From Anolis carolinensis (taxonomy: Eukaryota): 64,000 nt of DNA. Below are positions 18,347 to 18,844 of the stretch, one piece after another; the stretch's first letter is position 1, and every line of letters starts with the position of its first letter. Location: assembly GCF_035594765.1 (NCBI RefSeq), contig NW_026943821.1, positions 22,749,791-22,813,790 of the forward strand. Reading direction: 5' to 3'. The position numbers and the translations under genes were made by a program. The notes below the pieces were generated by a model. The model had not been told where the DNA came from and made no database searches. It saw only the letters and a program-made list of their open reading frames with translations.

Positions 18347-18844
18347 TTAAGTTGTCATATGAGGGAGAACTAGGGAGAACAAACCAATGAGGCCGAGGGT
18401 GACCATGAGAGGCCAGGTCATGTCAGGACCCAACAGTGGAGTGGGGTAGCTCCTCTTGCGGGACACGGTGAAGGTCTTCGCCGTCCCTTCCTTCTCTTTC
18501 AGGTGGGACCACAGGAACTTCAGCTTTGTGGGAGGGAAGAACTTGGCCCCAAAGAGGTTGCATTTGGGCAGAAAGAAGTGGGGCAGTTGAGCTGTAGCCA
18601 CTTCGTGAAGGAAGTTGGACAAGACCCGCTCAAAGCATGAAGCCATCTCGCCAGGCTGCCAGTCGGTGTCAGCCTTCGACTCCCAAAGCGAATGCAGGAA
18701 GGAGGTCCGGGCGTGATAACAACTCAGGTGGGCCAGCATCTGGGGGTATTCTGCCTTGAGAGCGGCCACCAGGTCCTCCAGCATCTTCAGACACTCCCTC
18801 CTAGAACACAAGTCCTTCAACTGATGCAAGCATCTCAGGCAAAC

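Follow-up and report, generated by a model that had tools for sequence, protein, structure and literature searches.

The stretch of DNA considered here, called the window, comprises 64,000 nucleotides of Anolis carolinensis (NCBI RefSeq assembly GCF_035594765.1, contig NW_026943821.1, positions 22,749,791 to 22,813,790 of the forward strand), and carries on its minus strand a gene for a cGAS-like protein, the last exon of which runs on into a hydrophobic C-terminal tail. cGAS is regarded as a soluble sensor, the location of which (cytosol, nucleus, or plasma membrane through an N-terminus-mediated association) controls the discrimination between self and non-self. The tail of the anole protein is transcribed, is conserved in orthologues and is predicted to anchor the protein in an organelle membrane.

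Support from RNA was obtained by aligning contigs of four public runs to positions 18100-24090 of the window (5,991 letters). Five minus-strand GT..AG introns are skipped in the contigs of three transcriptome-sized runs from three studies, and all five junctions are carried by each of two contigs with lengths of 2.7-2.9 kb. The transcript consists of seven exons, including a non-coding 5′ exon (Table 1). In-phase translation, exon by exon, gives an intact open reading frame (ORF) of 528 codons that starts with the ATG at 24021 and closes with the TAA at 18347-18349, the product of which is 100% identical to P0001, i.e., the 528-residue NCBI entry "cyclic GMP-AMP synthase-like [Anolis carolinensis]". 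This database protein was used for the whole-protein analyses, and the exons themselves were translated singly. Codon reading of the hydrophobic segment in the RNA contigs reveals two variants relative to the window, a V-to-I change at 18403 and a synonymous one at 18383. The exon with the tail is transcribed and spliced.

Table 1. The anole cGAS-like gene and its neighbours, with positions counted from the first letter of the window. AF2, AlphaFold2; dN/dS, ratio of nonsynonymous to synonymous substitution rates; UTR, untranslated region.
Feature	Position	Strand	Basis
Exon with non-coding 5′ sequence (~157 nt; upstream end approximate)	25729-25885	-	Loose end of contig X4 past 24077 maps uniquely to 25729-25758; GT donor and AG acceptor verified
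Exon 1, ATG at 24021-24019	23781-24077	-	Spliced RNA contigs; exon-wise translation
Coding exon 2 (end of disordered N-terminus, first core helix, GS motif)	23098-23411	-	Spliced RNA contigs; translation
Coding exon 3, metal-binding motif E-F-E-V (cGAS: E-F-D-V)	21676-21907	-	Spliced RNA contigs; alignment; weak Pfam Mab-21 match
Coding exon 4, Ser at the third catalytic Asp position (MSVSLIPALE)	21287-21532	-	Spliced RNA contigs; alignment
Coding exon 5 (TWRISFSHIEKEIL... and zinc-thumb region)	20348-20447	-	Spliced contigs X4, X8, X10; GT-AG and frame verified
Last coding exon minus linker and tail: Mab-21 C-terminal (HhH/H2TH-like) domain	18479-18800	-	PF20266 7e-18; acceptor AG 18801-18802 backed by spliced contigs
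Linker from last core helix to hydrophobic segment; RKR basic patch, conserved DMT motif before W	18416-18478	-	Translation; AF2; dN/dS
Predicted transmembrane segment WPLMVTLGLIGLFSLVLP, residues 507-524 of 528	18362-18415	-	Direct translation; hydropathy; AF2; conservation
C-terminal end HMTT, uncharged, and TAA stop (18347-18349)	18347-18361	-	Direct translation
3′ UTR, ~1.07 kb, AATAAA at 17293	17273-18346	-	RNA contigs extend ~827 nt beyond 18100; poly(A) signal found
BTB-BACK-Kelch gene	6864-9195	+	Pfam
RPL11 exons	12534-13904	-	Recognisable peptides in ORFs
PPT1 exons	~35400-44000	+	Recognisable peptides in ORFs
CAP1 exon with polyproline stretch	~54100-54500	-	Recognisable peptides in ORFs

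The initial annotation of this DNA had pointed to a basic patch, a hydrophobic segment and a very short end lying beyond the normal end of cGAS. The minus-strand translation of 18347-18480 reproduces its string exactly, that is, a linker with RKR, WPLMVTLGLIGLFSLVLP (18415-18362), HMTT and the TAA stop, and both the uncharged hydrophobic segment of ~18 residues and the four residues before the stop are read directly. The tail is in frame and lies in the same uninterrupted exon (18800 to 18347) as the Pfam match to Mab-21_C (PF20266, 7e-18), from which it is separated by the linker of ~20 residues containing the RKR patch. The alignment to cGAS halts at about residue 110 of the exon product, and the linker and tail therefore fall outside the aligned cGAS domain, as had been supposed.

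A hydropathy scan of the whole protein showed that residues 505-523 form the sole strongly hydrophobic 19-residue window in the 528 residues, with a Kyte-Doolittle value of 1.94; the second-best such window (1.26) is a strand of the core beta-structure. According to the same scan and the AF2 model, the N-terminus is basic, disordered and not hydrophobic, and is devoid of signal-peptide-like character. The tail-anchored topology that had been proposed is thus supported by the sequence, with a single hydrophobic segment at the C-terminus, none elsewhere and no signal-peptide-like N-terminus, and with only four residues after it the segment would be too near the C-terminus for co-translational recognition. 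The AF2 model, built on a 70-sequence alignment, contains a confident core at ~135-490, mostly with a predicted local distance difference test (pLDDT) score >90, followed by disorder at 493-507 and by a low-confidence helix of its own at 508-522, which does not pack on the core. A glycosylphosphatidylinositol-signal or secretory reading of the tail was rejected because there is no N-terminal signal peptide, and a lipid modification because there is no CaaX or similar end.

The tail sequence is kept in nine orthologues, namely those of Sceloporus, Phrynosoma, Rhineura and Zootoca, three Podarcis entries, the python Liasis and the softshell turtle Pelodiscus, with a pattern common to squamates and Pelodiscus (DMxWPLMxT.GL...) that closes in LP plus 2-8 residues. 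The dN/dS values (Nei-Gojobori) calculated from three species, Anolis, Sceloporus and Zootoca, are 0.16-0.26 for the tail, 0.35-0.58 for the linker and 0.10-0.14 for the domain, with small counts and high dS but a clear direction; the linker is thus the least constrained part of the last exon, and the tail is under purifying selection. The same tail sequence in nine orthologues, together with its dN/dS of 0.16-0.26, excludes a chance origin of the tail.

Hydrophobic C-terminal tails of other sequence were found in the shark Mustelus, the sturgeon Huso, several teleosts, Crocodylus and platypus. In the shark and platypus, ~150 codons in frame extend from the domain match to the called gene end, which is the length of one last exon, as in Anolis. 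A word search starting from the Albula protein recovered 115 further fish proteins, 112 of which are tailed, including a zebrafish "cyclic GMP-AMP synthase" and a grass carp "cGAS-like protein". The initial annotation had made its claim depend on a hydrophobic tail in orthologues, and such a tail is present in them. The tail is therefore not an oddity of one protein; judging from these sequences, it appears to typify a whole vertebrate cGAS paralogue, and to be older and wider in distribution than had been supposed.

The tail has also been lost. The protein ends early, with the tail gone, in the colubroid snakes Crotalus, Pantherophis and Erythrolamprus, and in the Pantherophis DNA (L003:19661-20180) the second half of the segment can still be read, as a remnant, in the +1 frame, which identifies the loss as a frameshift. 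Chrysemys-type turtles (L006:20468-20860) have a stop directly after ...HEE, at the point where the crocodile orthologue runs into the linker and hydrophobic segment. The anchor was thus lost independently twice, by a frameshift in colubroid snakes and by a premature stop in hard-shelled turtles. The simplest reading of the whole distribution is that the anchor would be the ancestral state of a gnathostome-wide cGAS paralogue, with several independent losses.

Both the Mab-21 nucleotidyltransferase and the Mab-21 C-terminal domains are precomputed for P0001, and the Mab-21_C match on the last exon is accompanied by weak PF03281 matches on exons 3 and 4. The best solved relatives of the last exon are mouse, human and pig cGAS (5.5e-18), with MAB21L1 and MiD51 far behind (E ~0.004-0.01). 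When the AF2 core was compared with the PDB by Foldseek, the top 50 matches were all cGAS, with E ~1e-26 and target TM-scores of 0.78-0.84. Its domains and predicted fold place the anole protein in the cGAS / cGAS-like receptor (cGLR) family of Mab-21 nucleotidyltransferases.

Within this family, a maximum-likelihood tree of 93 proteins (Shimodaira-Hasegawa-like support) separates a tailed group of 30 tips (support 0.958) from the canonical cGAS group of 61 tips, which holds shark, bonefish, amphibian, squamate, turtle, bird and mammal members of its own. Since the canonical clade also has shark and teleost members, the split between the paralogues predates the radiation of jawed vertebrates. 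NCBI names the members of the tailed clade in reptiles and platypus "cGAS-like"; to this clade belong the gene published from grass carp as cGASL and, probably, the fish genes called cGASb. A hydrophobic end is absent in 59 of the 61 canonical proteins; the exceptions, P0085 from the frog Leptobrachium and P0018 from the gecko Sphaerodactylus (marked low quality), could reflect independent gain or gene-model error. The anole gene is not the orthologue of canonical cGAS, given its separate clade and its different locus beside RPL11 and PPT1, and a separate canonical cGAS is present in Anolis sagrei, Podarcis muralis and Rhineura.

Gene order agrees with the tree. RPL11 follows on the same strand in Anolis, Sceloporus, Zootoca, Pantherophis, platypus, Mustelus and zebrafish, and an EEF1A-like gene precedes the orthologue in Sceloporus, Zootoca, platypus and zebrafish. 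No EEF1A-like gene was found upstream of the anole gene (24100-35400 of the window), where PPT1 comes after a 70-bp repeat array; PPT1, not an EEF1A-like gene, is likewise the upstream neighbour in Pantherophis. The Chrysemys and Crocodylus loci showed no neighbour gene within 10 kb. Orthology is supported by the clade support of 0.958 together with the conserved [EEF1A-like]–gene–RPL11 order. A gene model of Crotalus horridus, P0002, fuses the last cGAS-like exons with RPL11, which is an annotation artefact and as such confirms the gene order in rattlesnakes. The EEF1A-like neighbour mirrors the human arrangement CGAS–MTO1–EEF1A1, a hint that the pair of cGAS genes arose by whole-genome duplication. 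None of the homologue searches recovered a member from birds or therian mammals, which is suggestive of a loss of the paralogue in both groups.

The array between the cGAS-like gene and PPT1 is a G+C-rich minisatellite at 29675-31840 with ~31 copies of the 70-bp unit, 84% identity and strong GC skew, which contains many spurious 69-residue ORFs in all frames because 3 x 70 = 210. Within the gene, words from the intron stretches at 18900-19900 and 20900-21300 occur in the contig sets at depths of 10^3 to 10^6, which marks these stretches as highly repeated elements. Related ORFs are found at 19097-19297 and 28003-28404, and on the minus strand positions 28150-28458 hold the remnant of a mariner-type transposase (...SPDLASSDFYPF...). 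Just upstream of RPL11, 231 consecutive N at 15702-15932 represent either an assembly gap or masked sequence.

The catalytic residues of the squamate proteins have changed. In all 10 squamate orthologues aligned, E-x-E stands where cGAS has E-x-D, and the third catalytic position holds Ser in three of them (Anolis, Sceloporus and Phrynosoma) and Asn in six, with an alignment gap in the remaining one, the Podarcis isoform; Ser is thus found in iguanians and Asn in lacertids, the amphisbaenian and snakes. The E-x-D...D set is intact in Pelodiscus, crocodile, turtles, lungfish, fish and shark. The residues of platypus are degenerate too, with E-x-S and an Arg at the third site. The motif of active cGLRs has been defined as h[QT]GS X8-20 [DE]h[DE]h X50-90 h[DE]h, in which the third position is acidic (PMC9980059). 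The anole sequence departs from this motif, since GS and E-F-E-V are present but the third acidic residue is replaced by Ser. Squamates lack the third catalytic acidic residue in this protein yet keep a canonical cGAS, which suggests that the lizard protein is most likely a non-enzymatic regulator. As for the zinc-thumb region (20348-20447), it reads H-x5-C...CC, with Ala replacing the first Cys of the CC pair of cGAS and one extra residue before the last Cys; H362, C368, C376 and C377 stand in columns conserved in at least 90% of the alignment.

Compared with canonical cGAS (MB21D1), the anole protein has the same predicted fold, the Mab-21 and Mab-21_C domains, the GS motif, a partly kept zinc thumb and a basic disordered N-terminus. 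However, canonical cGAS forms a separate clade at a separate locus, has an intact catalytic triad and ends shortly after the ...NN.FP.F motif without a hydrophobic tail. Among membrane-anchored relatives, MiD49 and MiD51 (MIEF2 and MIEF1) have non-catalytic Mab-21-type nucleotidyltransferase folds and act as receptors or scaffolds on an organelle surface. The anole protein resembles them in joining such a fold to a predicted membrane anchor, probably without catalysis, whereas their anchor is N-terminal and in the mitochondrial outer membrane and that of the anole protein is C-terminal; MiD51 is, moreover, only a distant relative (E ~0.01 vs 5.5e-18 for cGAS). TREX1, on the endoplasmic reticulum (ER), and MAVS, on mitochondria and peroxisomes, both of which are described as tail-anchored (PMC11904002, PMC11348129), are built alike, with a cytosolic domain joined by a linker to one C-terminal hydrophobic segment that is followed by a short end. 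The domains of TREX1 and MAVS are, however, unrelated to the cGAS-like domain, and the anchor of the cGAS-like protein is a prediction from sequence.

The closest systems studied functionally are the fish cGASb and cGASL proteins. The grass carp "cGAS-like protein" and a zebrafish "cGAS" belong to the tailed group, both with a hydrophobic tail, and the zebrafish gene has the same EEF1A-like–gene–RPL11 neighbourhood. Fish proteins differ in keeping E-x-D...D, which the anole and all squamates do not, and their tails are more hydrophobic and have no recognisable sequence in common with the squamate tail. Killifish cGASb gave no measurable cyclic GMP-AMP (cGAMP) and no immune-gene activation, and zebrafish cGASb is given minimal activity in the same source (PMC13694710). 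As cited in two other papers, grass carp cGASb is a competitor of cGASa for STING, and signalling via MITA/STING is inhibited by cGASL (PMC11264591, PMC7582293). By length, killifish cGASb (472 residues) fits the cyprinodontiform members of the tailed group (440-474 residues).

Taken together, these findings make it probable that the tail is a genuine, expressed and selectively maintained tail anchor on the anole orthologue of an ancient vertebrate cGAS paralogue, the lizard protein itself being likely an ER-tethered, non-enzymatic regulator or scaffold of the STING pathway. In this mechanism, an organelle membrane, most likely that of the ER, would take up the single hydrophobic helix after translation has ended, with four residues beyond the helix, and the flexible linker of ~20 residues would allow the Mab-21/cGAS-fold domain to stay cytosolic, close to the membrane surface at which STING is located. 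The lizard protein would then most likely work as a membrane-tethered regulator or scaffold of the STING pathway, not as a cGAMP synthase. From the sequences we infer membrane insertion, the identity of the membrane and the regulatory role; the last is the most likely function and also the weakest link of the reading.

Several points weigh against this reading. The transmembrane call was made from hydropathy only, and the tail has low confidence in the AF2 model (pLDDT 42-52). The squamate segment is moderately hydrophobic (grand average of hydropathy (GRAVY) 1.65-2.3), bounded by prolines and contains two glycines, which makes the efficiency of insertion uncertain. Fish and amniote tails are alike in position and character and have no recognisable common sequence, so that common descent of the tail is a matter of parsimony, not proof. 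Colubroid snakes and hard-shelled turtles retain the gene in tailless form, showing that some lineages can dispense with the anchor. Finally, the equation with cGASb is based on the grass carp cGASL entry and on protein lengths.

The initial annotation had left the membrane open between ER and mitochondria. Across 128 tailed members, the mean GRAVY of the 18-residue segment is 2.6, and the residues after this window number 2.7 on average (at most 11), with a median net charge of 0 and a mean of +0.43. The mean tail charges reported for tail-anchored proteins are 0.21 for the ER, 1.12 for mitochondria and 6.0 for peroxisomes, with the ER proteins being more hydrophobic (Costello et al., PMC5450235). 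By this charge rule, the short and uncharged C-terminal end makes the ER the most likely target, and the sequences favour it. Since the squamate segments are less hydrophobic, mitochondria are nevertheless a second candidate. The protein would in that case be a true tail-anchored protein on the mitochondrial outer membrane, or on mitochondria and peroxisomes as with MAVS, with its domain near leaking mitochondrial DNA or RNA or near MAVS. Grass carp cGASL is reportedly a promoter of MAVS degradation. The moderate hydrophobicity of the squamate segment (1.65-2.3) is typical of mitochondrial anchors, the basic RKR patch lies upstream of the segment, and grouper cGAS, for which no transmembrane segment is predicted, partly co-localises with both ER and mitochondria (PMC9945316). 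However, the ends of these proteins are short and essentially uncharged (HMTT, QTAT, YMTP; median 0), as compared with +1.1 for mitochondrial and +6 for peroxisomal proteins (PMC5450235), and the segments of the fish orthologues are highly hydrophobic (mean 2.6) in the manner of ER anchors, which leaves the mitochondrial alternative unlikely.

The hydrophobic end might also not be inserted in a membrane at all, and serve instead as a soluble self-association or autoinhibitory helix, as a partner-binding motif, or as a hydrophobic degron lowering the protein level. The first half of the squamate and turtle tail (DMxWPLMxT.GL) is indeed conserved more tightly than hydrophobicity alone demands, and its loss is tolerated by colubroid snakes and some turtles. 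Yet what has been kept over ~450 million years is hydrophobicity, length and position at the end, not sequence, which is the pattern of a membrane segment and unlike that of a specific binding motif; moreover, the 18 positions hold no charged residue and AF2 leaves the helix undocked from the core, so that a soluble element appears quite improbable. Far less credible still is that the tail is a chance read-through past the domain, a decaying pseudogene or an annotation artefact, for which the degenerate catalytic residues of squamates could be cited. The ORF is intact, all introns are GT-AG, spliced RNA was found in three studies, dN/dS is well below 1 on both domain and tail, and the tail is kept in more than 120 orthologues; this reading is already refuted.

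The anchored STING-pathway regulator can be set in a wider evolutionary scenario, which is put forward tentatively and with some doubt. Jawed vertebrates would have had two ancestral cGAS genes, probably from early whole-genome duplications, one soluble and one ER-tethered beside STING, the tethered copy being mainly a modulator or decoy of STING. The repeated loss of either catalysis (squamates, platypus) or the anchor (colubroid snakes, hard-shelled turtles), along with the seeming full loss in therians and birds, suggests such a membrane-bound modulator or decoy. Functional studies of fish cGASb and cGASL would then have overlooked the anchor.

The gene is already annotated, and its fish orthologues have been studied. 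Full-text literature searches gave no description of a transmembrane or tail-anchored cGAS, although the original zebrafish and grass carp papers were outside their scope and a prior mention is possible; three papers on fish cGASb and cGASL (PMC13694710, PMC11264591, PMC7582293) contain no mention of a transmembrane segment. The anchor, the depth of its conservation and its natural losses thus appear undescribed in the literature searched.

Many vertebrates, apparently not including therian mammals, thus have a probably membrane-tethered relative of cGAS. The anchor could explain why fish cGASb and cGASL bind STING, make little cGAMP and act as negative regulators. C-terminal tags, or truncations to the Mab-21 domain only, would destroy or mask the anchor and lead to a wrong location of the protein in functional assays. 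Ready comparisons are offered by nature, through the loss of the anchor in colubroid snakes and hard-shelled turtles and of catalytic residues in squamates and platypus. If the reading is true, a paralogue tied permanently to an organelle membrane through some 450 million years would give cGAS–STING signalling a new level of spatial organisation.
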